DNA from: Fonticula alba ATCC 38817
Lineage: Eukaryota > Protista > Nucleariida
Strand: one strand, 5' to 3'
Length of the DNA stretch: 63,515 nucleotides
Assembly (NCBI GenBank): GCA_000388065.2
Contig: KB932208.1
Every line of letters starts with the position of its first letter. The first letter of the stretch is position 1. Made by a program: the position numbers and the translations under genes. Below, one piece after another: positions 1,846-46,144 of the stretch. The notes under the pieces were generated by a model. The model had not been told where the DNA came from. It did not search any database and saw only the letters and a list, made by a program, of their open reading frames with translations.

Positions 1846-3591
1846 ATGAAGCACGCGCAGCTTGTCATTGGCACGGCCGGCGCCGGGAAGGTATGTCACA
1901 CAGCGATGCGCCTCTCGGCGGATGACCGACTGACGCCCACCCTCTCCGGGGCCCTGTTGCCCCTCCCCTCTCCCGATCCAATCGGCGGCTGGGCTCCAAT
2001 CGCCCGGGTCACAGTCGACGTACTGCAGCACCATCATGCAGCATTGCGAGGCCAGCCGCCGGACAGTGCATGCCATGAACCTCGATCCGGCTGCGGAATA
2101 CCTTGCCTACACCCCGTCGATCGGTGCGTTCCAATGCCACCGGCGCCCGGCGACCCTGTGCCTGTCCTCCCTGCCCGTGTCTGACGCTCGTGGGCCGCTC
2201 GCGGCGTGCACATCCCCGGCCATGGGCCATCAGATATCCGCGACCTGATCACCCTCGAGGAGGTGATGGACGACCTGCGGTATGGCCCGAATGGTGGCCT
2301 GGTTTACTGTCTTGAGTGCGTGCCGCGCGTCGGGCCCCCCGCATCGGCCATGCCGCCTGCCAGAAGCCGGCCACCCATCTCACACATGACAATGCACACG
2401 CCAACAGGTACCTCCTGGACAATTTCGAGTGGATGGAGAACGAGCTGGACGATTACCAGGATGACTACCTGATCATTGACTGCCCCGGTACGTGCCGGTG
2501 CCCGGCCCTTCATGCCAGCCTGGCGCATGCTCTCGGCCCCTTTTGACACGTGTGTTCCCCCCTCCTTCCCTTTCCGCTGTTCACACACACACACACATGC
2601 ATGCATGCATGCATGCACATGTACATGTATGTGCGGGGCCTGGCGACCTGCAGGGCAAATTGAGCTGTACACCCACTTCCCGGTCATGAAGGATTTCGTC
2701 GGCCATCTGCAGCGCCTCGGTTACCAGGTTGTTGTGGTGTATCTGATGGATGCCCAATTCACGGATGATGCGGCCAAATTCATTTCCGGCTCGCTGGCCG
2801 CCCTGTCGGCGATGGTGCGACATTCACCTGGCCGCTGCCCTTTTTTTTTTCCCCCTCCCCCCGCCCCGGCCCTTCGTGCCCTTTGTGGCTGGCCACCCGA
2901 TGCAGCACGCTCACCGTGACATCCCACGGCCCTGTCTCCGTGGCCTTGGCGGCGGCCCTGCGGCCTGCCGAAACAGATCCAACTGGAGCTTCCCCACATC
3001 AACGTCCTGTCGAAGATCGACATCTACTTGCAGCGCCACACGACGCCGGACGGGACGCAGCCCCGGCGCCTGGGCCGGCGCTTGGACCGATTCCTCAACT
3101 TCGACATCAATCGCCTGCTGACCGACAAGAACCGTCGTGGGGACATGGACCGTCCGATTGCTCGGAGCAATGTCCAGCAGGGGAATTTCGCGTCGCTCAA
3201 CTCGGCTGTCGCTCGCCTGGTGCGTGTCCGCCCCACCTTGGCCCCCCTCTCGCCGGCTGTGTCACGCCCCCTTCTTCTTCTTTTTTTTTGCCGCCCCTCC
3301 TCGCTCCCCTCACCCCCGAGCCTTGACCGCCCCATGCCCCGCGCAGCTGGAGGAGTACAACATGGTCAGCTTCCTGCCGCTGGACATCACCGACGAGGAC
3401 TCCATTGAGCTGGTTCTCTCGCACGCGGACCACGCCATCCAGTATGGCGAGGATTTGGAGCCGCGTGAGCCGAAGGTGCGTCTCTGTCCAGCCCCGAGAC
3501 CGCGGGGGCAAGTGAGCTCGAGGATCGGGCCCCCCTCCCGACGACCGCGGCCGAGTCTAACCCTTCCCTCTGGCAGGCCGACGAGGAGTGA
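1846..3591 (+). CDS. GPN3: GPN-loop GTPase 3, about 8 exons
   Basis: P-loop GTAGAGK|[28 protein letters not shown]|[31 protein letters not shown] and IQYGED, assembled across GT-AG introns; ends ADEE-TGA at 3591. Confidence 0.93.
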
Positions 3592-3902
3592 CCGTCCTTC
3601 ACCCGCGCCAACTGACCCAGGCACGCGCCGCCGGCGCCTAGAATGTGCCAACCTTGCTGTGGGGACACCTCAATACAAAAGAAAACCAACCACCGATCCT
3701 GAGCCACGCATGCGGCGCGCACATATGTTTGCTTGTTTGCTTGCTCTCCTTTTTTTTTTCTTGCATGCGCTAATTCCACTGCTCGGAGCCGGGCCGGGGC
3801 CTGGAAAAGGCCCTGCCCCGGGGCACTGCGGTGTGTTGCGCGGCAAGAAAAGACCAGACACTTGACGACTTGAGCGAAGGAGGGAGACCACCCCGAGGGG
3901 AA

Positions 3903-3903
<1 letters not shown>

Positions 3904-3965
<62 letters not shown>
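3904..3965. repeat. 62-nt poly-G homopolymer between the convergent GPN3 and HDAC 3' ends
   Basis: Uninterrupted G run read directly from the sequence. Confidence 0.9.
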
Positions 3966-3966
<1 letters not shown>

Positions 3967-3981
3967 GCAGGACGCTGGCCT

Positions 3982-6654
3982 TCAGTCGGGACCAGGTCGG
4001 GGCCGATTGCTGGCTCCGAGGCCAACGCCGCGCCCCGTACCGACGATATCCAGATCATCGTCGGGGCGCGCGCGCGTCGGGCGCGAGTCCGCCGAGGCGC
4101 CAGCGCGGCGCTTGGCCGGAGCACCGACCAGCAACGCCCCGCACCCGACGTCATCCGGTACGCTGGAAACGTGGGGGAGGCGGTCGGATCGTGTGCGGCC
4201 GATGAAGCGCCCATCACGCCGGGAGGACAGCGCCCCGGCCGGCCGGCTTGACCCCCGGCCCCCGGGGGACTGGCGTGCCGGGTCGTCAATGATCAAATCC
4301 CCCGCCCGACCCGCCGAACGGAAGGGATCCCCGACATCCAGGCCGCCAGATCCATCGGACCCCGGGTGATCCTCGTCGCCGGAGTCCGAGGAGGAGCCAT
4401 CGGCATCATCGCCGAAGCGTGTCAGGGGCGGCGGGAGCTCCTGCATCTGGACACTCGGGGCATGAGTAATCCGCCGGAAGATCTCCGCCACCTTGGCCTC
4501 CAGGCCCTTGAGGTAGGCCCGGTCCTCTTTGAGAGCAGCGCGCGCGGCGCTCGACGACATTCCCGACCCGACGGCCGCATGCGACGAGGAAGTCGTTATC
4601 CCCGGGTCGTGCAGAAGGAAGGAAGGGGCAAAGTAATCGATGTATGGATTGCTGGGGATCTACATGGCGCGGAGAGGCGGAGGGGGGCGGAGGGGGGGGA
4701 AGGGGGGGGGGGGCAGGGCGAAGGAGGCGGGGGAGCGTTATGAGCACATGTACAGACCCACCCGCGTGCATGGTGCATACACAAACACATGGGCACACAA
4801 AGAGCACACATGCATGCGCGACGGGCCGGGCACATGCGGGCCAGGCACATGCGCCAAAGGGCGAAATGACGGACGGGGGGGAATTCCGGACACGCACCTC
4901 ATCCGGGATGTCCTGCCCGCAGACGACAGCAGTCTCCCAGGTCCAGCACCGAGCCACATTGCGCACAGTGTACCCGCCTCCGCCGAGGACCAGAGTTGGC
5001 CGATTGAAAGACCGGACAAAGCGCACACATTCCCCATGGCCGCGGACACTGAGATTGAAGCGCCCGAGGCGGTCGCAGCCCAGCGAGTCGGCCCCGCATT
5101 GGAGGACAATGGCCCCGGGATTGAAATGCTCAATGGCCCGGCGAACCACCGGCTGGAAGATGGACTGGTACGATTCGTCGTCAATCCCGTCCTTCAGGGG
5201 AACATTGATGGAGAAGTTCTGCCGAAGGCAGTCGAACCGGCGGCAGGAGGACAAGGGCCGTGGCAGGAGGCGGAGGGAGGGAGGCGGAGGGGCGGAGAGC
5301 GGGTCAGAATCGCGGCCAGTGTGGTAGCAACCGGGCAGCCGCCGAACGCGCGGCCGCCGGAGTAGCAGAAGGACCCGGAGGGTACGCACCGTGCCGGCAC
5401 CGACACCAACCTCGGTGATGTCTCCAGTGCGGGGGAAGAAGTGGCCGTCATACTTGTGGAAGGAAAGGGTCATCACGCGATCAGTGACGTAGAAGGCCTC
5501 TTGCACCCCATCGCCATGGTGCACATCGATGTCAATGTACATGACTCGCGCATGGACGCTGCGCACGAAACCAGCGGCCACGAGGGGGAGAAGGGAGAAG
5601 AGGCGGGGGCGAGCGGGGGAGCGGTGAGCATGCTATTGTGGTGATGGCAGTGGATGTGAAAGAGAGAGAGGCAGAGAGGCAGAGAGGCAGAGAGAGGCAG
5701 AGAGAGGCAGAGAGAGAGAGAGAGAGGCAGAGAGAGAGGCAGAGAGAGAGGCAGAGAGAGAGGCAGAGGCAGAGAGGCAGAGAGGCAGAGAGAGGCAGAG
5801 AGAGAGGCAGAGGCAGAGAGAGAGGCAGAGGCAGAGAGAGAGAGGCAGAGAGAGAGGCAGAGAGAGAGGCAGAGAGAGGCATGGGGGCGCACCGAAGCAG
5901 CTCCAGGATGGCCAACACAATGTCATTGACATAGCAGAAGCCACTGGCTTCGAACTTCTTGGCGTGGTGCAGCCCGCCAGACCAGTTGATGGCCACATCG
6001 CTGGAGCCGTCATTCAATTTGTAGGCGCCATCCAGCGAGCCACCGGCGTAGCGCTGGCAGAAGTCGAACATCCCCGGGAAGACGGGGCAATCGTCGCCGA
6101 AGTTGAAGCGCGTCAGGGTGTCCAACGTGAAGGAGTGGATGTTGCTCGGGGTCACCCTGCTCGGTTCGCACAATGTCAGGAGGAGAGGGATGGCAAAGGA
6201 GAAGGCAGGAAGCGGCGCGCGGGCCATCTGGCGAGGGGGGGGGGGGTGTCTGCATGAGAGCGAGAGAGGGGGGGGGACGAACCGCTTGAGGAAGTCGATA
6301 TAATCGGCCGAGTGGAACTGCCGCATTTCGTGCTCCGTGGCCCGCCGGGGACGAAAGATGGACATCTGCCGGTGTTGAGAGGGACAAATAGGTATGCAAG
6401 TGGAGGGGAAGGGGGACAAGAAGGCATGGCCGGTGAGTTGCCCGGGAAATGACCGACAACCGGGGCCACGCGCTTGAGGGACGCACACTGTTGTGCAGGC
6501 CATAAGAGGACACCAGGTGATGTGTCAGGACAATCCGGTGCGGCTTCATCGGGTGAAAGGCCCCGAAGTGGAAGTTCCCGATCGACGGGTCGGAGAAGTA
6601 GGAGATGCGGTCATTGTAGTGCCTCTGAGACTGGAAGGCTGGTCGGTGAGACAT
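3982..6654 (-). CDS. HDAC3: Class I histone deacetylase, HDAC3/Hos2-like, multi-exon, with long disordered C-tail
   Basis: [21 protein letters not shown] (Hos2-like), [84 protein letters not shown] at 6654. The HDAC3/Hos2 subfamily assignment is less certain than class I. Confidence 0.88.
5661..5880. repeat. Intronic GAGAGGCA/(GA)n compound simple repeat in the HDAC gene
   Basis: Direct reading; lies between the LLR| and |[10 protein letters not shown] exons. Confidence 0.85.
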
Positions 6655-31959: not shown

Positions 31960-33067
31960 CTGCGTGGATGCATCGGGTGGATGTGGTGTCCGCGGGCGGG
32001 CGAGTGACCCATGTGGCGGAGGAACGCGTCAGTTGGCCTGCTGTGCATAGGACGCCGCACTTGGTCGACCGAAACGCACATCGAGCGACACATCTCCCGC
32101 CGCTGCGTCGAGCGCCACCGGCGACCTGCGAGCCGCCCACCGGATAAGCTGATCCAAGATGGGGCTATTCATTGGATGGGAAAAAAATGGGCATATGTCG
32201 GGGCATGAAGACAAGTGTCTCTGCCATTCGGCGATCCAGAAGGGCCCGCGAGGGAGGGCGCTTGTCGGACAGCTGCGAAGGGCTCGGCAGCCAACGAGAT
32301 CAGACAGCGGTCGGCAGGGCAACGGGAGGCGAAGGGGCAGGAGGGTTGGGGAGCTTTGACCGTCGGGGCCACCAGACCCACCCCCAATAGCGGGTAATTT
32401 ATATCCGCCCGGAGGAGACGTGGTGGCGAATCCCCCCCCCCCCCCCCCCCCTGCCAGCGTCACTCGACCGAGCACTGCCGACATCTGGGGCGCACCGGTG
32501 GGAGGGGCGGCCGGCCCCGATCTCGCGCTTGGTGCTGGCCGCCTCAGGAGGACGGTCGTCCCCAGGCGTGCCTCCTGGTCGCCCACTTCCGTGGGTCCGG
32601 GGCCTCTTGCCCCACGATCAACCGCGAGCCCGCCACTGCCAACGCAATGGCCGATCGCCCGGTCGCAACACCCGGATCGCGGACGCCCCGCCCCGTCTCG
32701 GTCGGGGGCGACATCGCGAGACCGCGGGGCGGCTGGGGCGGGGGGTGTCCGAATGTGGTCCAGGATTGGCCGCGAGACGGCGCGGTTATGGGGGCAGAGG
32801 GGGGGGGGGGGGGGGGGGGGGGGGATGGTGGGCAGAGCAAGAGCAGCATGCAATTTGGGGGGATATATTCTTGGGAGAGAGTGGTGCTGGCGGCAGCAGA
32901 AAAAAGAGAGAAAGAGAGAGGGAGGGAGGGAGATCGCGCAAACAGGCGGGAGGCATGTCCGTCTAATGGGGGAGGGATGTGCCTCTGCGGGGGGCGCGAG
33001 CAGGCACAGGGCCGCAGGGATTGTGGCCGAGTGCACCCCCCCGAACCCCTGGGAGCTCCCCCGCCGA

Positions 33068-33277
33068 TCAAGAGAAGACCCAGTTGGCGGCCAGGATGTA
33101 GGCGCCGACGAAGACCGCGCCACCGGACGCCAGGGTCATGGCCGTGCGGCCGATCACCTTGACCGGAGTCGGGATGCTGGACAGGATGGATGGCTCGGAG
33201 GGGGCCGCGGCGCCTGCCGAGCCGGACACCGCAGGCAGGACACTCGTCAGCGCGTGCAGGAAGGAAAGCAGCAGCAT
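33068..33277 (-). CDS. Short ORF or exon with signal-peptide-like start (MLLLSFLHALTSVLPAVSG)
   Basis: Hydrophobic N-terminus; either a 69-aa small membrane protein or the first exon of the 31240-31959 gene via donor AAG|GTGATC at 33157. Confidence 0.35.
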   Translation of the reverse strand: MLLLSFLHALTSVLPAVSGSAGAAAPSEPSILSSIPTPVKVIGRTAMTLASGGAVFVGAYILAANWVFS

Positions 33278-33311
33278 CACATGGAAGGGCGACTGCCGGA
33301 GGCGGGTCGAA

Positions 33312-33347
<36 letters not shown>

Positions 33348-33760
33348 NNNNNNNNNNGGGGGGGGGAGGAGAGGATGGGGTTGGCATTCTCGGCCAGGGA
33401 CGCCTCGGCCCCCCCCGAGCGCCCCCTAAATAGATCGGCACCCCGGCGTGATCTTTCAGCAATGCGCCGGGCGTCGCGCCACCATGGCGGCGCTGCCCAC
33501 GCATTGCCCCGATGCGGCCCCAGCCCGAGGAGCTGCGGGGGAGAAGAAAAAGGCCCGGCGCACACCGACGGGGCCAGAGGCGCGAAAAGGATCCGCGCCA
33601 GGATCGCTCCCCCCCCCCCCCCCCCCCCCCCCCCGAGAGTGCTTTCCCCCGGCGATCTCCCCTCCATCCTCCCCCACCCGCTGCTTGTTCCTCCCTCCCC
33701 TCCCCCCTCCCTCCTGCCCGCCTCAACCGCCGCGCACAGGGACGACGATGTGCCGGCAGC

Positions 33761-35846
33761 ATGGCCGATAGCGTCCTTCCTCTTCTCGTGGTGTCGACCC
33801 CGGCACCGGCTGGGTCGGCCCCCCGGCCAGCCGTGTGGCTGTTGCTTCCCGCCGCCACGGTGCCAGCCATGGCCGCATCGGCCACCGACACTGTTGTCGG
33901 GCCACACTGTGCACGCTTCGGCCGGAGCGCCCAGTGTGACATCCCCGTGGCCGGGGACGCGCACATCAGCCGCCAGCACCTGGCCTTCTGTGTGACGCGC
34001 ACCGCGTGCCCCCCTTCCCCGGACCCTGTCGCGCACTTGGCCCCGCTCCCCGGGCTTGTGGTTTTCGACCTGGGCGGGTGCAATCCCCCACGACACGCCA
34101 ATGGCCAGGGGCTGGTGGCGCGCGGGGACCGCCGGGGGGTTCGCTTCGGCTCCTTGACGGAGCCTCTGCTTGTCGGCCTGTCCAGCGTGGCCTTTGGCCG
34201 GGCGCTGGTTCTGGCCCGAGCACCGGTCGAAAGGCTGGGCCTCCTGGATCCCGTTGTCCCCGGCCAGCCGGACGGTCGATCGGACGTCGGGTTCACACAT
34301 CTGGTTCTAGACGCCCCGGAGCTGTCGCTGGCCGCTGCCAGCCAGGCCCCCCTCCAATTGGCTGCCATTGCCATGGTGCATGCCTCCGTCCTTCTTTCTT
34401 CCTTTCCCTCCCTCCCTCTCTCCCTCTCTCTCTCTCTCTCTCTTTCTCTCCCGCTTCTCTCGCTGGCTTGCTGACTCGCTGCACGTTTTCCCGTCTGACA
34501 GACCCTGCTGTGCGCACGCGCCGGCGCGCCCGTTGTCGCTGAGGCCTGGCTCGAGGGAAATGGAACCGGATCCTCCACGCTGGCGCGGTCTCTGAGCCCG
34601 GCATCCGAGCACCCGGTCCAGGTGACCCTGCTTGGAGGTGAGGCTCTGCCGGTGGACCGATTGCCGATCGCCGCTGCCGGACCCGGGGCCCTCCCCTTGG
34701 CCGGCCTGGCCTTTCACCTGCCACGCCTCTCGCAGGCCTTTTCCTCCATGTCTCTGACATCGCTCCTAATGTCCGAACCGGTGGGTCCCTCCCTTTTGCT
34801 CTGGTCCATCCCCACTTTCCGGCCGCCTTCCCCCCCCCCCTCCAATCCCTTCGTTGTCCGTCCTCAGTCTGCTAACCGGCTCCTTGTCCCAGCTGCTTCT
34901 TCTTTTGGCCAGCACCCTCGAGCGACTTGGCGCCCGGCAGCTCGATGTCTCGGATGTCGGGGCCCTGGGGCTGGAACACTTCTTCGTCCCGGCGGCCGTG
35001 CTGATGGTCTCCGCTACGGTGGGCCACTACTCAATGGGCACCCCGCGGGTTATCATGCCGATTGTCGAGTGCTTGGACTTCCTCCTGCGCGATGTGCTGC
35101 CTGAGCCCCTTCAATCGCTGCAAGCCGATGCATCGGCGGGTGGCGGTTCCTCCCGGGTGGAATCCCAGCCGACGGCGGCTTCCCCGGCCGACTCCCAACG
35201 GCTGACCGAGCAGCTGGCCGAGCTCCCACCGGGGCTGCTTCCCAATCCGGCCCCCGGCCTGGCGGACGAGCCGATGGACCATCCGCCGCCCAAGCTCCCG
35301 CCCAGGCTGCTGGCGAGGCGCTCCCCGGAGCCGGAGCCGGAGCCGGAGCCGAAGCCCCAGCAGCCGGTGCATCTCCCCCCGAAGCCCATGGCCAAGCCGC
35401 TGACTGAGCCACGGGTTGGATCGCTGCCCAGGTCACTGCCTCAACCACCATCACACGAAAGCCCGGTCCAAGGATCGCCCCAAGCCCCCGATCGAATGCC
35501 GCACTCTTCCCATCCCGAGTCACCTGGTGGCCGGCCCGCTGACCCCGGAGATGAGGCGCCTGCTGGGCCGGCGTCATCGCCCTCGCCAGCGCCAGCGCCA
35601 GCGCCATCGCCATCGCCATCGGCTTTGATGTTCGCCGCTTCGCCTCCGATGTCGGGCCTCCCCCCCCATGCCATGCCGGACACCCTGGCGCCCTCTTCAA
35701 TGGAGGCTGACCCGGCCTCCGGCTGGCGCCCCTCGTACGCATCCCCTGCCGGTCGGATACCCTGCCTACGAAACCGGAAGATTTTCAAGAAGCGCCGGCC
35801 GATCCCCCTGCCCCGGACAACTGGGCGGCCCTCCCCCCTCCCCTGA
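33761..35846 (+). CDS. FHA-domain protein with Pro-rich disordered C-terminus
   Basis: FGRSAQCDIPVAGDAHISRQHLAF carries the FHA G-R and S-x-x-H residues, followed by HANG; spliced through exons at ~34502-34780 and ~34890-35846. Confidence 0.65.
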
Positions 35847-35880
35847 CGCTCCCCGACTTCCAAGGGCATTCACTGGGACC

Positions 35881-36549
35881 NNNNNNNNNNNNNNNNNNNN
35901 NNNNNNNNNNNNNNNNNNNNNNNNNNNNNNNNNNNNNNNNNNNNNNNNNNNNNNNNNNNNNNNNNNNNNNNNNNNNNNNNNNNNNNNNNNNNNNNNNNNN
36001 NNNNNNNNNNNNNNNNNNNNNNNNNNNNNNNNNNNNNNNNNNNNNNNNNNNNNNNNNNNNNNNNNNNNNNNNNNNNNNNNNNNNNNNNNNNNNNNNNNNN
36101 NNNNNNNNNNNNNNNNNNNNNNNNNNNNNNNNNNNNNNNNNNNNNNNNNNNNNNNNNNNNNNNNNNNNNNNNNNNNNNNNNNNNNNNNNNNNNNNNNNNN
36201 NNNNNNNNNNNNNNNNNNNNNNNNNNNNNNNNNNNNNNNNNNNNNNNNNNNNNNNNNNNNNNNNNNNNNNNNNNNNNNNNNNNNNNNNNNNNNNNNNNNN
36301 NNNNNNNNNNNNNNNNNNNNNNNNNNNNNNNNNNNNNNNNNNNNNNNNNNNNNNNNNNNNNNNNNNNNNNNNNNNNNNNNNNNNNNNNNNNNNNNNNNNN
36401 NNNNNNNNNNNNNNNNNNNNNNNNNNNNNNNNNNNNNNNNNNNNNNNNNNNNNNNNNNNNNNNNNNNNNNNNNNNNNNNNNNNNNNNNNNNNNNNNNNNN
36501 NNNNNNNNNNNNNNNNNNNNNNNNNNNNNNNNNNNNNNNNNNNNNNNNN
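35881..36549. other. Assembly gap (N)
   Basis: Run of N; likely hides the remaining TM exons of the GET2/CAML-like gene. Confidence 0.95.
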
Positions 36550-36691
36550 GCGACCTCAGGGGGGAGGCGCGGGGAGCGAGAGGACCGAGGGGAGGAACGG
36601 AGTCGCCGAACGGGGCAGCCCAGGCCGAGGGGGGTCAGAAAGTTGCTCGAGCAGAAAGGAAGGCAAGTCAATCGGCGTGGGAGATGCGCAC

Positions 36692-39600
36692 GTAGAGCGA
36701 GCTGCTTGCCTGCTCTGGGCCGCTGTTGGCCCAGGCCAGGATGAAGCCGGCCGCCACAAAGAGGAAAGTGATCATTCGATCGCGCGAGCTCAGTGGCCCG
36801 GGCCAGCCAAATCCAAGGGCCGACCGCGCGGCCGAGGAGGACCCCAGCGCGCCGGCCAGCGCCAGCGCCGCCCCACCGGCCAGGCCGCTGCCGCCGATGC
36901 TGCTCATCCCGGCCGACAGGGAGTTCAGATCCAGCCCGGACAGATCGCCACCGGCTCCCAGCAGGGCCGAGGCCATCTGCTGCTGGCTGGCAAGCATCTC
37001 CTCTTGGGAGGGGCCGGCCGCGGGCCGGGCGCCAGGCCGCGCGGCCGCGGCCCCACGGCCGGTGGCGGGCCCACTGGCAGGAGTGCCACCCACCCCGAGC
37101 GCCTTGAACATGCTGTTCATGCTCTGGCGGCTTTGGTCGGCGTCGGTATCCACCCCGGACATGGTCGGCATGGTGAAGGGCGACCCGGGCATGTTGAAGG
37201 GGGTCAGGTGCTCGCGCGCGGTCGGGGCCGCCTGGTGGGCGTGCTGGCCGCCAGTCACCGCGGGCCCGGCAGCGGCCCCGGTGTCGGCCGGCTGCGCCGC
37301 CTCCGGCGGGGGGGTCCGGCTCACGCGCGACTCCACTCCGAGAATGCGCTGCATGCGGGACTCGCTGTTGCGCAGGAGGCGCTCGCGCCGGCGCTGTGCC
37401 GACCGCTGCGCCGGGGACATGGTATCGGCCACGGCATCGGCGGCCGTCGGGGCCGACACCGGCTGGGGGGCTGCGCGTGCGGCGGTTGACGCAAGTGAAA
37501 AGGGCCGTCAGCGAAGGGGGGAGAAGGCGCAAAAGGAAGGTCCCCAAGCAAAGACGCACAGGCAGGCTCCTTCGGCGAGGGGGGAACCGACGTGGCGGGG
37601 GAGGAATCTGATGCGGCAGGAGTGTCAGTGGGAACCGTCTTGTCGGTGGCGGTCACGGGCGAGTCGGTCGGCCAGTGGGCCGAGTCCGAGCCGGTCTCAG
37701 CCGCAGTGACGGCACCGGGGGTGGCGGTGGACATGGCCGCCGCGGCAGCCTCCGCCAATTGGACAGCCTCCACGGCCTCGGCCACCTCGGCCTCCGTGAT
37801 CTCCACCAGGTCGGCAATGGTGGCGGTGGCCACCCCGGACTCCTCGGCCACAGTGCTCTCATCGACAGCGGCATCAGCTGCAGTGACCTCGGTAAAGGCC
37901 TCAGTGGTGTCGAGCTCGGGCGCGGTCTCGGTCTCGGGTGCGGTGATCTCAGGCTCAGGGACAGCCTCGGCAAGGGCTCCCGCGTCGCCTTCCGCCTCGA
38001 CAGGCTCGGAGCTGTTGACCTCAGCCTCGAGCACGGTGGCCTCAGTGCCAATGCTCGGGATCTCAGTCTCGGCTCCGGTGACATCGATCGCAGCCTCAGC
38101 CTCAGTGATCTCTGCAGTCACAGCCTTGGTGCAGACCACCACAGCCTGGACCTCGGCCTCGACAGACTCGGTCTCCGCAATATCAGCCTCAGTGACGGCG
38201 ACCTCAGCGGCCTCGGTGACCTCAGTGGCCTCAGGCTCGGTCCCGGTCTGGGTCTCGGTCTCGGTCTCGGCGGCCTCAGTGGCTTCGGTCAGAGCGACCT
38301 CGGCGACCTCGGCGACCTCGGCGATCTCAGCGACTTCAGAAACCTCAGTCTCAGCGATCTCAGTGACTTCAGCGACCTCAGCCACCTCAGCGGACTCAGT
38401 CTCGGCCTCGGTCTCGGTCTCGGCGACCTCAGTCTCGGCGACCTCAGCGACCTCAGTGACTTCAGTCTCAGCGACCTCAGTGACTTCAGTCTCAGTGACC
38501 TCAGCGACCTCAGTCTCGGTCTCGGCGACCTCGGTAACCTCAGCGACCTCAGCGACCTCAGTGACTTCAGCGACCTCAGTGACTTCAGCGACCTCAGTGG
38601 ACTGAGTGACCTCAGGAGCCTCAGTCTCGGCAACCTCAGTCTCGGCAACCTCAGTCTCGGCAACCTCAGTGACCTCAGCAGTCTCAGTCTCAGCGACCTC
38701 AGTGACCTCAGCCACCTCAGCCACCTCAGCCACCTCAGCCACCTCAGTCTCGGCCTCAGTCTCGGTCTCGGCGACCTCAGTCTCGGTAACCTCAGTAACC
38801 TCAGTCTCGGTAACCTCAGTAACCTCAGCCACCTCAGCAACCTCAGCCACCTCAGCAACCTCAGTGACCTCAGCGACCTCGGTAACCTCAGTCTCGGCGA
38901 CCTCAGCGACCTCAGCGACCTCGGTAACCTCAGTCTCGGCGACCTCAGCGACCTCAGCGACCTCAGCGACCTCAGCGACCTCAGCGACCTCAGCGACCTC
39001 AGCGACCTCAGCGACCTCAATGGACTCAGTGATTTCGGTGACCTCAGTAGACTCAGTGACCTCAGGAGCCTCAGTCTCGGCAACCTCAGTCTCGGCGACC
39101 TCAGTCTCGATGTCGGCGACCTCGGCGACCTCAGTGACCTCGGCAACCTCAGCCTCGGCGACCTCAGCGACCTCAGTCTCGGCAACCTCAATCTCAGTGA
39201 CCTCAGAGGCCTCAGTCTCGGTGACCTCAGTCTCGGCGACCTCAGTCTCGGTGACCTCAGTCTCGGCGACCTCAGTCTCGGTGACCTCAGTCTTGGCGAC
39301 CTCAGTGGCCTCAGCAGTCTCAGTCTCAGCGANNNNNNNNNNNNNNNNNNNNNNNNNNNNNNNNNNNNNNNNNNNNNNNNNNNNNNNNNNNNNNNNNNNN
39401 NNNNNNNNNNNNNNNNNNNNNNNNNNNNNNNNNNNNNNNNNNNNNNNNNNNNNNNNNNNNNNNNNNNNNNNNNNNNNNNNNNNNNNNNNNNNNNNNNNNN
39501 NNNNNNNNNNNNNNNNNNNNNNNNNNNNNNNNNNNNNNNNNNNNNNNNNNNNNNNNNNNNNNNNNNNNNNNNGACCTCAGCAGCCTCAGCGACCTCAGCA

Positions 39601-40994
39601 GCCTCAGCGACCTCAGTCTCGGTGACCTCAGTCTCGGTGACCTCAGTCTCGGTGACCTCAGTCTCGGTGACCTCAGTCTCGGTGACCTCAGTCTCGGTCT
39701 CGGCGGCTTCGGTGACTTCAGTGACCTCAGTGACTTCAGTGACTTCAGCAGCCTCGGCAGACTCAGCAACCTCAGCAGCCTCAGCAGCCTCGGCAGCCTC
39801 AGCAGCCTCAGTGACCTCAGTCTCGGCGACCTCAGCGACCTCAGCGACCTCAGCGACCTCAGCGACCTCAGCGACCTCGGTAGCCTCAGCAGCCTCAGCA
39901 GCCTCAGCAGCCTCAGCAGCCTCGGCAACTTCAGAGGTAAGATCAGCCTTGACCTCGGTGCTGATGTCGATCTCAGCGTCAGAGACAACACCATCCTCGG
40001 CAGCAGCCTCGGCCTCGGTGGCATCAGCGGCCTCGGACTCGGCAGTCTCGACATCCTGGGTCTCAGCCTCGACCTCAGACATGTCAACAGGCTCCGCGCT
40101 AACTTCATCGATTTCGGCACCAGCATCGGCAACAATCTCAGGCTCGGTCATGACCTGAGCCCCAGCGTCAACATCAGCCCCAGCGTCCGCATGGCTGGTC
40201 TCAGTTCCAGCTGCTTCAGCGGTGGCCCCAGACTCGGAGTCAATTCCGGTGGCAGCCTCGGGATTCTCGGCCTTGTCGGCCTCAGAGATCTCGAGGGTTT
40301 CGCCACCAGCATCGGGCCCAGATGCCTCGGCCTCCTCGGCAGATTCGGTCACAGGCTGGCTCTCAGTCACGGGCTCGCTCTCAGTCACAACCTCGCTCTC
40401 GGACTCGGCCACAACCTCGTTCTCGGACTCGGCCACAACCTCGTTCTCGGACTCGGCCACAACCTCGCTCTCGGACTCGGCCACAGCCTCGCTCTCGGAC
40501 TCAGACTCAAGGGAGATGGAAGGGTGGATACCTGAATTGGGCGTGTCGACGGAGATAATTTCGGCGCCTGGGCGTGGGAGGAAAGACGGAGGAAGGGGTA
40601 AGTTAAGTCAGTCAGTGGCGGCGGGGAGCCATCGAGAACAAAGGAAGAGAAGACGAAGGGGGAAGGGAGGCGGGGGGAGGGAGGGAGGGAGGGAGGGAGC
40701 GCACTCGGCTGCGCGATGACCTCCACCGAAGGGGCCGCCTCGTCGGCGACCTCGGCCGCCACAGGGACATTCTCATTCTCCTGCTCGCTGATCATCTCAA
40801 ACCCGGACTCGCTGCCGGGAGAGCTGGGCTGGAAATCTGAGGGACATCAGGCAAAATGGCCAGGGGGTCAGCACGCGGGCGAGGGATTCCACGCAGCGGA
40901 AGGGCACACACGCACCGCCATCCTCGAACTGATTGTCATCGTGGGGTGAGCTCGCTGGCGAGGGGGAGCCTTGCATATCGTCAAGGGGGCTCAT
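36692..40994 (-). CDS. GET2: GET2/CAML-like tail-anchored-protein insertase subunit with apparent giant acidic repeat N-terminal extension; 3' end in gap
   Basis: MSPAQRSAQRRRERLLRNSESRMQRILG (from 37420) matches the conserved CAML/Get2 N-terminal motif, followed by a flexible linker and a first TM (ITFLFVAAGFILAWA). Upstream exons 40994-40916, 40836-40705 and 40567-37560 splice in phase to 37470. Confidence 0.72.
38270..39930 (-). repeat. Coding minisatellite of 9/15-nt units (GCTGAGGTC, ACTGAGGTC, ACTGAGACT) encoding AEV/TEV/TET repeats; includes gap 39333-39572
   Basis: Direct reading: cctcagcga/cctcagtga/ctcagtctc iterated for about 1.6 kb. Confidence 0.92.
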
Positions 40995-43137: not shown

Positions 43138-43156
43138 AGCCAGCCAGCCGGCCGGC

Positions 43157-43225
<69 letters not shown>
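43138..43225. repeat. (CAGC)n tetranucleotide microsatellite
   Basis: About 22 units, one short CCGG interruption. Confidence 0.88.
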
Positions 43226-46144
43226 GTTGTGGCGCCAGATCCGACATTGGCCGGTGCAACGGTCCTCCGGCACACCTTACGCGGGGCTGTCTCGGCCCCT
43301 TCTTCGGGACCGCCCTCCTACTCGCCGCCACCGCCGCCCTGGACTCATGTGGGTCACGGCCTCCAAAGTGGCTCCAGAGCTGAACCTCCGCCCCCCCCCC
43401 CTCATGCCCATGACCCGACTGGGTAGAGGAGCAGACTCTCCAGACGGCCGACCAACCGTGCCTTTCGCTGACGGTCAAGGGGCCAGCCGCGCATCCTCTC
43501 GGGCGCGCCTTCCGGTACTGGTGCTCAGGTGGCGGCAGGCAGGGGCTATGCACCGCATTCAGGGTCCCGGGGGCAAATCCGGTCCTCCCAGAAGCGGCAC
43601 TCCTCGCCGTAGAATAACCTTGCATTCGAGCGAAGCCCATGCTCGCACACGCACATGCGTCTTTGTACGGCCGTGAGGTGGGCCGCGGGCTCTTGCGCCA
43701 CCCGAGTCGCATGCACAAGCCTTGTCCGTGCGAGCACCCCCCCCCCCCCCCACACACACACACATACATACACGCACGTGCTTCCCCAAAGTGACAGCGA
43801 ATCCCCCTCTATTCCTACGTGCAAGATCCCCACAGACCGGGCGACCTGGGTCCTGGATGGGGGGGGGGGGGGGGGGGCAGGAGAGTGGTGCCGGCGAGGA
43901 GGACACCCGGCCTGGCTCGGAAGCAGCCCTTGGTGAGACGCCCGGGGGATGCTAAGGAGGCCGAAGATGGTTCCATCGCGTCATGTGTTCCCGAGCAGCC
44001 CCTGAGAGATGGATATGTGTTGCGCGATTTGACTCTGCCCATTCGCCAAGGCCGATCTGGCGGCCGATCCAGCGTTGTGCATCCCCGGACGCGACACTGC
44101 TGGCGACTGGGGTGGCGATGACAGGTGCATGACCTTGCGCGCGCGCGCGCGCGCGCGCGATCGCGCTCAGGGCGTCTGGCAGGCTTGGACGCCTGCGCCA
44201 AGGCCGCGTGCTTTCGACGCCAAGCGGCAGCACGCTCCCCCCTGCGGCTCCCTGCCGCGCATAGGTTTACTGGTGGATGGGGAGGCCCCGCCTCCCGGCC
44301 AGTCGGCAGAGAGGGGGCCATCTAGCGCACGGCAGAGCATGGTACAGGCGTGCGCTCGTGTGGCGGGGGCCCGGTGCACCGGCAACACTGGCGGCCCTCG
44401 GGCTGTGAGAAATTCAAGCGAGTTGGACAGGGGGCTGGCCGGGGAATTCGCACGGCCCGCACACCCGATGGCGAAGGCCCTCCTCGTCCCCCCCCCCACC
44501 CCACCCCACCCCACCCCCCAGCGGGCTGCGCACCTCGCCGGACGTTTCTGCCTCTAGAATGCGTCTTCCTGTGCTGCGCCTCGCCCGCTGATTTCACGCC
44601 TCCCATGCCAGGCCTCGGGCCAGGACCTGGCTCCCCGCGCCAAGACCATGCCCTTCAGACGTGCGGGTGTTGCACCACCCAGATCGCCGGTCGAACATTG
44701 CCCTGGTGGGTGTATGTGCGTGGGAGTGTCACTTCGCGCATGTGCTGCCGCCAAGACCTCCCCCCCCCCCCCCCCCCCGCACTCGCGCCCCGCACCCGCT
44801 GCGGCCGCCTCAGCCCCAGGGAAGATCAATGTGAAAGGCCCTCGGTAGGGGGGTCATGCTGGGGGCTTTTGGGCTCGTTCCTGGAGGATCTTGCCCCTGG
44901 CACAACCTCCTGCCCGTATTAATGACCGGGGACTTTCAGCTCCCCGCCTGGCCCGGCCCTGGCTCACCTGCCCCTCCTTGGCGGATCTCAGCCTTTCGGG
45001 CAGGACACGCAGCTTGACGAGCTCAAAACAGATTGCACGGCCCTGGAAAGTGCCAGGAAGAGACGCCTGCGCACGGGCACACACGCATGTGTAAGGGCCA
45101 GGGCTGCCATTTAGTTGCCGGTGGGCCGATTCGCCCCCGGCCCCCCTCCTCCTTGGGTGGACGCAAGGAAGGGGGGGCTGCTGGGGGAACAGGCATGGCC
45201 TCAGGCATGCTCCCAGCCGGCCCGTGTGCCCCCCGCCCCCCGCCCCCATCTCAGCTCAGCCCACTCGCGCCCCTGGGTACAAGACGCCCTCACCACGCCA
45301 CCATCAGTGGGAGCCTCCCCCGCCAACACTCGCCCAGGACCAGGCAATCGCCCGCAATGATACGTTGCCGGGACCTGGCCCGGGCAGCATCATTACCGGC
45401 ATGGCGAGGCGCCGAAAGGGACTGATCGTGCGGTGCGCTGCCCCACGCCGTGTGTGGAATGCCTCGCCGCGACTCCCCCCTGTGCCCTTCCTCCCCCCCG
45501 GGGGCGGGGGAGGGGGGGGGGGGGGGGGGGGCAAGCCGGAGCCGAGGCGCGGGAGAGGCGGGAGGGGGCACATCCATCACGGCGTCGCGAAGGGCCGGGC
45601 AATGTGCCATCGTGCGCCGCACTTCTGCCCCATTTCCCGGCTGAGTGATCTTCCGCAACGTGCGCCGCACCTGACACACGCGGCGGCTATAAAGGCATCC
45701 AGAGTGGCCGTTCCCTCGGTAGGAGGTCATGAAGACCCTTTGCCCCTGCCTTCCTCCCTCTCCAAGACCACACTTCATGCACCTTTCCCGCCTGCCTGCC
45801 TGCCCAGCCACACACCACCGCCTCGACTTCCATTGAGCCTCCTTTTCTCCTCCGCCCCCGGCAAGAGCGAGCACGTTCACGCTTCCGCGTGTACGTCCAC
45901 ATCCAATGCCCACCCCTCATGTGCCTTCCTCGGCGCACTCAGGCTCCACAATGGGCCACCGGGGTGGGACGCTTGAGAGGCTGCAAGAGATCCAGCGAAA
46001 GAGGGAGAGCCAGGGAGAGAGATGCAAGAAGAGCAACGAGAAGAAGAGAGATACAGGGCAGGAAAGCACGAAAAGAGCAAGCCGAAAGACTCACCCAACA
46101 ACATCATAACGCCTCGCCCCCTCCCCCCCCCCCCCCCCCCCAGT

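Follow-up and report, generated by a model that had tools for sequence, protein, structure and literature searches.

The Get2/CAML receptor helps to insert tail-anchored (TA) proteins into the endoplasmic reticulum (ER), and its basic helix has been described as an N-terminal 'antenna'. To our knowledge, only this basic helix and the three transmembrane (TM) helices are conserved in Get2/CAML across eukaryotes. A stretch of 63,515 nucleotides from Fonticula alba ATCC 38817 (contig KB932208.1; hereafter the window) probably carries the single Get2/CAML-type receptor gene of this organism, with the docking helix placed behind a polyanionic extension in the same spliced mRNA and reading frame. 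The gene would be a previously unreported Get2/CAML candidate in a deep-branching relative of the fungi. A natural receptor with an internal helix behind a polyanion (net charge about -280) would test the dependence of docking on a free N-terminus, and also its response to local electrostatics. Should the extension be no more than a tolerated repeat expansion, it is one more case of low-complexity growth in the F. alba genome, and of limited consequence.

Gene structure and spliced mRNA

The likely best explanation of the locus as a whole is a GET2 gene of five exons on the minus strand, running from about 40994 to 33068 (Table 1). All four donors have the form GTGCG(T/C), and exons 1-3 show consensus splice sites and consistent phases. 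The sequence 5' of the ATG at 40994 is pyrimidine-rich and has a non-coding look. An acidic F-E-M-I motif occurs in predicted exon 2 (40790-40801).

Table 1. Features of the proposed F. alba GET2 gene (positions in the window).
Feature	Position	Strand	Details
Proposed exon 1	40916..40994	-	ATG at 40994; 26 codons + 1 nt; donor GTGCGT at 40915; sequence prediction
Intron 1		-	79 nt; GTGCGT..CAG; CTGAC 35 nt before end
Proposed exon 2	40705..40836	-	132 nt, phase 1 to phase 1; donor GTGCGC at 40704; sequence prediction
Intron 2		-	137 nt
Exon 3 before gap	39573..40567	-	331 aa, acidic, open frame; 24-, 27-, 15- and 9-nt arrays (TRF)
Assembly gap	39333..39572		240 N, estimated length, within repeat array
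Exon 3 after gap	37560..39332	-	590 codons; E/V/A/T repeats to ~38290, then 243-aa non-repetitive acidic tail
Intron 3	37471..37559	-	89 nt; GTGCGT..CAG; RNA contigs
Exon 4	36692..37470	-	Basic Get3-docking-type helix, ~180-aa low-complexity linker, TM1; whole exon under RNA contigs
Get2/CAML N-terminal motif	37316..37414	-	RRRER cluster, ..LLRNSE..RILG; PF14963 match
TM1	36719..36775	-	Exon-4 residues 232-250; Kyte-Doolittle 19-residue mean 1.66; predicted helix 228-248
Intron 4	33293..36691	-	3,399 nt as assembled; donor GTGCGC, acceptor CAG; RNA contigs
Exon 5, coding	33068..33292	-	74 codons; TM2 33221-33286, TM3 33077-33145; stop TGA 33070-33068
3' untranslated region	32857..33067	-	Extent inferred from how far RNA contigs run

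On the minus strand, the acidic exon ends with a T at 37560, followed by GTGCGT from 37559. The intron has CTGAC 41 nt before its 3' end and closes with CAG at 37471, and the frame is preserved across the junction (T+CC) into the exon with the basic motif. These positions, the intron length of 89 nt and an internal ATG at 37420 had been given in a first-pass annotation of this DNA, and all were correct on re-reading. The same annotation had suggested looking for the 37560/37470 junction in RNA, and intron 3 (GT..AG) is precisely absent from the RNA-derived contigs of two runs, X1 and X2. One contig in each run covers 731 nt upstream (38290-37560) and 779 nt downstream (37470-36692) of the intron with 0 differences. 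Both extend a further ~164 nt beyond 38290 into the repeats (to ~38454), and at least 895 nt of acidic ORF are spliced to the Get2 exon. Contig depth over intron 3 is 0, and among the X1 and X2 RNA-derived contigs there was none containing intron 3 and none starting near it; the fused form is the only one assembled, at a word depth of 30-35. The in-frame joining of the acidic repeat ORF to the Get2/CAML-like exon in one mRNA, as originally claimed, is supported and borne out by these spliced contigs.

A single study, with two samples, supplied the RNA evidence. The runs, otherwise guessed to be RNA, were taken as such because two introns are missing from their contigs at GT..AG borders. Contigs of this kind are blind to transcript starts and to minor or rare isoforms. 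A retrocopy as the origin of the intron-less contigs was rejected, since motif and repeats each occur in the genome at this one locus only.

At 36692, which is an exon end and not the gene end, the contigs depart from the window sequence and run on for 436 and 393 nt. The first 30 letters of this loose end, the part that was compared, match exactly and uniquely at 33292 (0 matches expected by chance). As the contigs resume there, the last exon, with TM2, TM3 and the stop codon, is placed at 33292-33068. TM2 and TM3 had earlier been sought inside the gap at 35881-36549; RNA contigs, translation and hydropathy locate them instead in a separate exon (33292-33071), 3.4 kb downstream. That gap, a second one at 33348-33357 and ORFs on the opposite strand all lie within intron 4. 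The corrected gene model has a 3.4-kb intron, in which a gene on the opposite strand is nested, and a last exon beyond the region 36692-40994.

Candidate receptor part and acidic region

The assignment of the downstream part to Get2/CAML is likewise taken from the first-pass annotation. Several weak but concordant lines (motif match, three TM helices, language-model neighbours, single locus, partners) support it as a candidate Get2/CAML-type receptor, but the Pfam scores lie below their cut-offs. Profile scans, folding and searches were run exon by exon, with exon 4, exon 5 and the acidic pieces taken separately. Exon 4 matches PF14963 (Get2_like) over profile positions 2-34 of 270 with 22.7 bits (E=1.2e-4; gathering cut-off 25.2), and PF08690 (GET2) with 13.2 bits (E=0.07; gathering cut-off 25.5), both below threshold. 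Exon 5 alone has no Pfam match. In the 31-Mb genome, the PF14963 match occurs at one locus only. AlphaFold2 predicts the motif helix at exon-4 residues 19-42 (pLDDT ~93), and the RRRER cluster is of the docking-helix type by the criterion of PMC7817167 (a cytosolic basic cluster of about four R/K in a helix), according to which the family conserves only the basic N-terminal cluster and the three TM domains (TMDs). Three C-terminal hydrophobic helices (TM1, TM2, TM3) are seen by hydropathy, and the exon of TM2 and TM3 is tied to exon 4 by the RNA contigs.

The best match in the Atlas, a language-model resource, is a GET2 cluster (0.92, 207 shared features), and half of the 30 listed matches (15) fall in the GET2 set; the recognition value is under the level reached by most known families. 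Both partners are encoded in the genome, Get1/WRB (PF04420, 33.9 bits) and Get3 (PF02374, 97.8 bits over four exons). A word-based protein search with exon 4, whole or motif only, returned nothing. Among 1.84 billion representatives searched exhaustively with HMMER, exon 4 had 0 matches, not even to itself (the Fonticula annotation apparently lies outside that library). Neither exon 4 nor the 40-aa motif found CAML or Get2 in PDB sequence searches, where all matches were due to chance.

The C-terminal part is expected to work as other receptors of the family do: a basic amphipathic helix would dock Get3/TRC40, followed by a flexible linker of ~180 residues and three TM helices as the expected partners of Get1/WRB in the ER membrane. 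The motif is not near the N-terminus, where only a hypothetical short isoform would have it, being preceded by at least 298 codons in the spliced mRNA and by ~1,010 codons plus the gap in the full model. The long-form protein may still serve as a Get3 receptor. This is plausible because the cytosolic domains of Get2/CAML proteins still act on or bind Get3/TRC40 when a bulky partner is fused to their N-terminus: TA insertion is blocked by GST-CAMLcyt and GST-G1IPcyt (PMC7817167), and MBP-PfGet2CD binds PfGet3 (PMC8629386).

The two halves of exon 3 (331 aa and 590 aa) contain 27-29% Glu and only 6 K+R, with net charges of -105 and -178. The first-pass annotation had described ~1000 aa of acidic tandem repeats. 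The acidity stands, but only about half of this length is strictly tandem (38293-39332, 39573-39930 and 40348-40502), the remainder being non-repetitive and equally acidic. The array periods found by TRF (9, 15, 18, 24, 27, 33 and 45 nt) are all multiples of three. In the repeat part after the gap, 95% of codons are for E, V, A or T, and of the 87 codons other than the four commonest, 69 encode the same amino acid as one of those four. The non-repeat tail of 243 codons is open in a single frame, the one that splices in phase. The two acidic pieces have no Pfam match, and an Atlas search with the 243-aa tail gave no usable match; genome-wide, the two halves match each other alone (55% identity, E=1e-13). 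The region probably grew through in-frame tandem duplication of E-V-A, E-V-T and E-T units, and would be translated from the ATG at 40994 across the gap as a disordered, cytosolic chain. Upstream of the docking helix there are ~990 readable residues (~920 from exon 3), the gap content being extra, and the helix probably lies at least ~1,000 residues from the N-terminus.

The frame before the gap finishes on a complete codon at 39573, while the frame after it wants one more letter before 39332. This means that the gap must hold 3n+1 letters, and the 240 N as written miss the frame by one letter. The two edges carry the same GAG-GTC-GCT type of repeat unit, on the same strand and in compatible phase (GAG GTC before, (G)TC GCT GAG after), which makes continuity across the gap plausible. 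A complete protein longer than 1,300 aa would depend on the gap and on the predicted 5' exons.

Alternative readings and the role of the extension

A real fusion could be far shorter than ~1,300 aa, if 40994-39573 belongs to another gene or is misplaced, or if a stop lies in the gap, so that the protein starts after it. The gap, which as written breaks the frame by one letter, may conceal a stop, an intron or a misjoin, the RNA contigs extend no further than ~38454, exons 1-2 and the start codon are predicted, and the sole in-frame ATG between gap and junction is at 37734. This shorter protein is nevertheless rather unlikely, given that the gap edges belong to one repeat family in compatible codon phase, the two halves resemble nothing else in the genome, and the splice sites and phases of exons 1-3 agree. 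Moreover, the ORF after the gap runs for 590 codons with no start codon near its beginning, as fits an internal part of a longer ORF. The repeat region might also be an untranslated 5' leader of the GET2 mRNA and not protein at all, as simple repeats of this sort leave several reading frames open, on either strand. That is very improbable: every period is a multiple of three, most differences among the repeats are silent in the frame that joins exon 4 in phase, no other frame stays open through the 243-codon non-repeat tail, and the several ATGs upstream of the main ORF would keep it from being translated.

The long mRNA may exist while the working receptor is a short Get2 of ~317 aa from the ATG at 37420, made from a transcript start within the last 50 nt before this ATG or by internal initiation, with the long form minor, unstable or irrelevant. 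The ATG has A at -3 and lies 2 residues before the Pfam-matched motif, a position as in ordinary family members, and contigs that cannot reveal starts or rare forms leave room for such a functional receptor. Two observations speak weakly against it, namely that only the fused form was assembled, and that an out-of-frame ATG at 37437, 17 nt upstream, together with four more upstream ATGs, would intercept scanning on any longer leader. Its promoter would also need to lie within a coding exon, and we consider two products of this kind unlikely. Still less probable is that the downstream part is no Get2/CAML homologue, but a chance arginine-rich helix before three hydrophobic segments of an unrelated membrane protein. 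The Pfam matches are sub-threshold and confined to 33 residues, significant sequence relatives were not found, and the Atlas recognition value is below that of most known families. Against this, the motif falls on the first positions of the family profile, its spacing from the C-terminal TM helices, of which there are exactly three, is right, the matches to two related Pfam families are in line with the Atlas neighbours, and the genome has Get1 and Get3 but no other Get2 candidate.

For the long receptor preferred here, our best guess is that the extension is a tolerated, lineage-typical acidic repeat expansion, with no more of a role than electrostatic spacing or weak cis-competition for the basic helix. 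The first-pass annotation had proposed roles as spacer, Ca2+ buffer or modulator; these may apply, with neutral expansion as a serious alternative, since one or more other Fonticula genes carry acidic E/V/A/T repeats of a similar kind. For the same reason, we give equal likelihood to a tolerated growth of low-complexity sequence and to a regulatory extension. Autoinhibition of docking is conceivable because the basic motif adjoins a large acidic chain, though it is doubtful that selection has made the polyanion a regulator built into the GET receptor. As a decoy, it would mimic the acidic Get2-binding surface of Get3 and mask the docking helix until displaced; as a brush, the charged chain would keep the helix far from the membrane and widen its capture radius. 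A weaker option is an autophagy adaptor, in which a disordered arm, with the F-E-M-I near its tip as a LIR-like motif, would link the GET insertase to ER turnover.

Comparison with known systems

The F. alba protein resembles mammalian CAML (CAMLG, PF14963) in its basic helix of the ..RRR..LL.NSE.R..RI.G type, in the long flexible cytosolic linker, and in the three C-terminal TM helices with a very short C-terminal tail. In contrast to the CAML family profile, in which the motif stands at the very start, F. alba has ~1,000 or more acidic residues before it, and the rest of the protein is not recognisably similar. With fungal Get2 (PF08690) it shares a basic cluster of the R-E-R type, three TMDs and the partners Get1 and Get3, and its nearest language-model clusters carry PF08690, whereas the direct profile match is low. 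The listed Get2-family clusters are 141-308 aa long, and a long acidic N-terminal region is absent from all of them.

Arabidopsis G1IP/AtGET2 and Plasmodium PfGet2 (403 aa) are highly diverged members of the family, having been recognised only by the basic N-terminal cluster and three TMDs, and their cytosolic domains stay active under N-terminal GST or MBP fusion (PMC7817167, PMC8629386). They differ in having the motif within the first few tens of residues, and neither of these two papers mentions a natural long extension before it. A parallel to the extension is present in F. alba itself, in a second acidic repeat gene (G000:C5:1539227-1541900). Its unit is 5 aa, as against 3 and 5 aa in GET2, the attached protein is different, and its repeats are not detectable as homologues of those in GET2. 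Both genes nevertheless carry hundreds of residues of in-frame acidic repeats (E-E-V-A/T-I/V in the second gene) N-terminal to an unrelated non-repetitive region, and in both the array is interrupted by an assembly gap.

Splicing of the acidic exon to the Get2-like exon

The first-pass annotation had proposed an in-frame splice at 37560/37470 (minus strand), joining an acidic exon (exon 3) to an exon with a docking motif (exon 4), and this is borne out by RNA contigs. The final letter of exon 3 is a T, followed by GTGCGT; the intron closes with CAG at 37471, CTGAC lying 41 nt before this end. The join, T+CC, forms a Ser codon, and the frame stays open into exon 4, which bears the arginine-rich motif. 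Four small sequencing runs from 2012 (one study, two samples) contain 94% of the sampled words, the missing 6% being equal to the intron share of the stretch. Two of the runs, X1 and X2 (one per sample), were mapped on 36550–38290. Each gives a single junction-crossing contig (2,110 nt and 2,067 nt, respectively; word depth 30–35) that covers 38290–37560, skips exactly intron 3, where depth is zero, and covers exon 4 without difference. The borders of the skipped segment are CT..AC on the plus strand, that is, GT..AG on the gene strand. Beyond 36692 the contigs run on for 436 or 393 letters absent from the mapped stretch. The RNA status of X1 and X2 is a guess, and their contigs are uninformative on starts, ends, strand and rare isoforms; however, as they lack two introns at canonical borders, and neither part has a second genomic copy, they must derive from spliced RNA. 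The fusion of acidic repeats and Get2-like sequence is supported at the RNA level. Raw-read RNA runs from 2026 (among X5–X24) carry the same species label and were coded as organism B; two of these have zero reads on the GET2-like locus and seem to be without this organism.

For a short isoform to arise from ATG 37420, whose context is good (A at -3), a start site would have to fall in a stretch of some tens of nucleotides within the gene; such a form is possible but unsupported. Any leader longer than 16 nt includes an out-of-frame ATG (37437), the ORF of which overlaps ATG 37420, and four further ATGs lie upstream of it in the contig-covered region. Retention of intron 3 was seen in no contig of X1 or X2, contigs being blind to rare isoforms.

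Gene model and assembly gaps

Features of the Get2-like gene (window coordinates, minus strand)
Feature	Position	Length	Signals
Start codon (proposed)	40994		ATG
Intron 1 (proposed)	40915–40837	79 nt	donor GTGCGT
Intron 2 (proposed)	40704–40568	137 nt	donor GTGCGC
Exon 3	40567–37560		
Assembly gap in exon 3	39333–39572	240 N	
Intron 3	37559–37471	89 nt	donor GTGCGT; acceptor CAG
Exon 4	37470–36692		
Intron 4	36691–33293	3,399 nt (as assembled)	acceptor CAG
Exon 5 (coding part)	33292–33068	74 residues	TGA 33070–33068

Transmembrane segments (TM) 2 and 3 had been guessed to lie inside the gap at 35881–36549, but the continuation of the contigs places both in exon 5, which encodes two hydrophobic helices. 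A 30-letter loose end of a contig past 36692 has a single match in the window (33292–33263, minus strand; chance expectation 0), directly adjoining the acceptor. Within intron 4 lie two gaps, as well as a group of ORFs on the plus strand (33764–35846). The ORFs are long, fall into at least three pieces and look like an opposite-strand gene nested in the intron; the only Pfam match is a borderline one to FHA (20.5 bits vs a cut-off of 20.7). Gaps flank the region at 33348–33357 (between two poly-C runs) and 35881–36549, and its scaffold placement is provisional.

The proposed three-exon 5′ part appears coherent in its splice sites, CTGAC branch-like motifs and consistent phases, and the sequence upstream of the start codon looks non-coding. 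All four donors of the gene read GTGCG followed by T or C, and CTGAC lies 35–48 nt from the acceptor in three of the four introns. A GGCTGGCT-type microsatellite that reads (AGWL)n in all three minus-strand frames lies ca. 2 kb upstream of the gene (43150–43230, minus strand).

The scaffold is gap-rich, with 13 runs of N in the window. Before the gap in exon 3, the acidic ORF (40567–39573) ends in a complete codon, while after it 39332–39331 form positions two and three of a split codon and whole codons follow from 39330, so that a single ORF needs a gap of 3n+1 letters. The gap as written puts the frame off by one, its length being an estimate. Its edges (..GCT GAG GTC before, TC GCT GAG ACT after) share repeat family, strand and compatible phase, and the two halves of the exon match only each other genome-wide (55% identity, E=1e-13). 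Continuity of the ORF across the gap is plausible. Leaving out the gap, the model comprises 3,980 coding letters, which together with 3n+1 gap letters predicts a protein of at least 1,327 residues.

The acidic extension

The two readable acidic parts of exon 3 comprise 331 and 590 residues, with 27–29% Glu, 22% and 20% Ala, 13% and 18% Val, 10% and 17% Thr, only six Lys and Arg in total, and net charges of -105 and -178. The description as ca. 1000 aa of acidic tandem repeats holds in that the sequence is acidic throughout, but only about half is strictly tandem, the remainder being acidic low-complexity. Tandem Repeats Finder (TRF) array periods are 9, 15, 18, 24, 27, 33 and 45 nt, and the sole period not divisible by three belongs to an intronic array. 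Four amino acids account for 95% of codons in a 347-codon repeat core. Variation there is mostly silent in the frame that splices in phase, since 69 of the 87 codons outside the four commonest are synonymous with one of those four. The non-repetitive tail (38289–37561, 243 codons) is open in that frame only. An F-E-M-I motif with Ser/Glu flanks (40790–40801, minus strand; proposed exon 2) is built like an Atg8-interacting (LIR) motif and lies close to the tip of the extension; two of the five aromatic residues in the extension fit [FWY]xx[LIV], which is not above chance for a Val-rich sequence.

A second Fonticula gene (contig 5, ca. 1539227–1541900; plus strand, ca. 3227–5900 of locus L014, which spans 1536000–1545000) has hundreds of E-E-V-A/T-I/V repeat residues N-terminal to an unrelated non-repetitive region, the array being broken by a gap (L014 4057–4413). 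This pattern has 17 matches, vs one for a reversed control, with shorter ones on contigs 3 and 11. In-frame acidic expansion of this kind is thus a habit of the genome, which raises the odds that the extension is a tolerated repeat expansion, a reading to which we give about half of our confidence. As it has almost no basic or hydrophobic-aromatic residues, the extension should form an extended cytosolic polyanion; a role as weak electrostatic modulator or spacer receives about a third.

Probable Get2/CAML identity and proposed receptor function

A match to a Get2/CAML profile was found, in that PF14963 (Get2_like) aligns with the N-terminal motif (exon 4 residues 19–51, profile positions 2–34 of 270), but its score for exon 4 alone (22.7 bits, E=1.2e-4) is below the cut-off of 25.2; PF08690 (GET2) gives 13.2 bits. 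In a six-frame scan of the entire 31-Mb assembly with PF14963, the GET2-like locus is the sole match. The genome also encodes the partners Get1/WRB (33.9 bits) and Get3 (four exons, 97.8 bits). Exactly three segments at the C-terminus are TM-like by hydropathy. In AlphaFold2 predictions without alignment, the motif is a helix (residues 19–42, pLDDT about 93), as is TM1, with a low-confidence linker. A language-model search, whose low recognition value makes it supporting evidence only, places exon 4 beside GET2 clusters (best 0.92, 207 shared features; 15 of 30 matches in the GET2 family set). Neither the protein searches nor those of PDB sequences turned up a sequence relative.

Only the basic N-terminal cluster, three TMDs and topology are conserved in the Get2/CAML family (Asseck et al., PMC7817167), and the Fonticula candidate is predicted to have all of these; it departs from the family in the Pfam threshold and in a motif that is not near the N-terminus. 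From family knowledge, the C-terminal ca. 330 residues would act as a Get3 receptor subunit, with TMs pairing with Get1 and the basic helix, on a flexible tether, capturing Get3-cargo complexes. A large N-terminal addition need not destroy such action, because fused family members stay active: GST-CAMLcyt and GST-G1IPcyt remain able to block TA insertion (PMC7817167), and MBP-PfGet2CD binds PfGet3 (PMC8629386).
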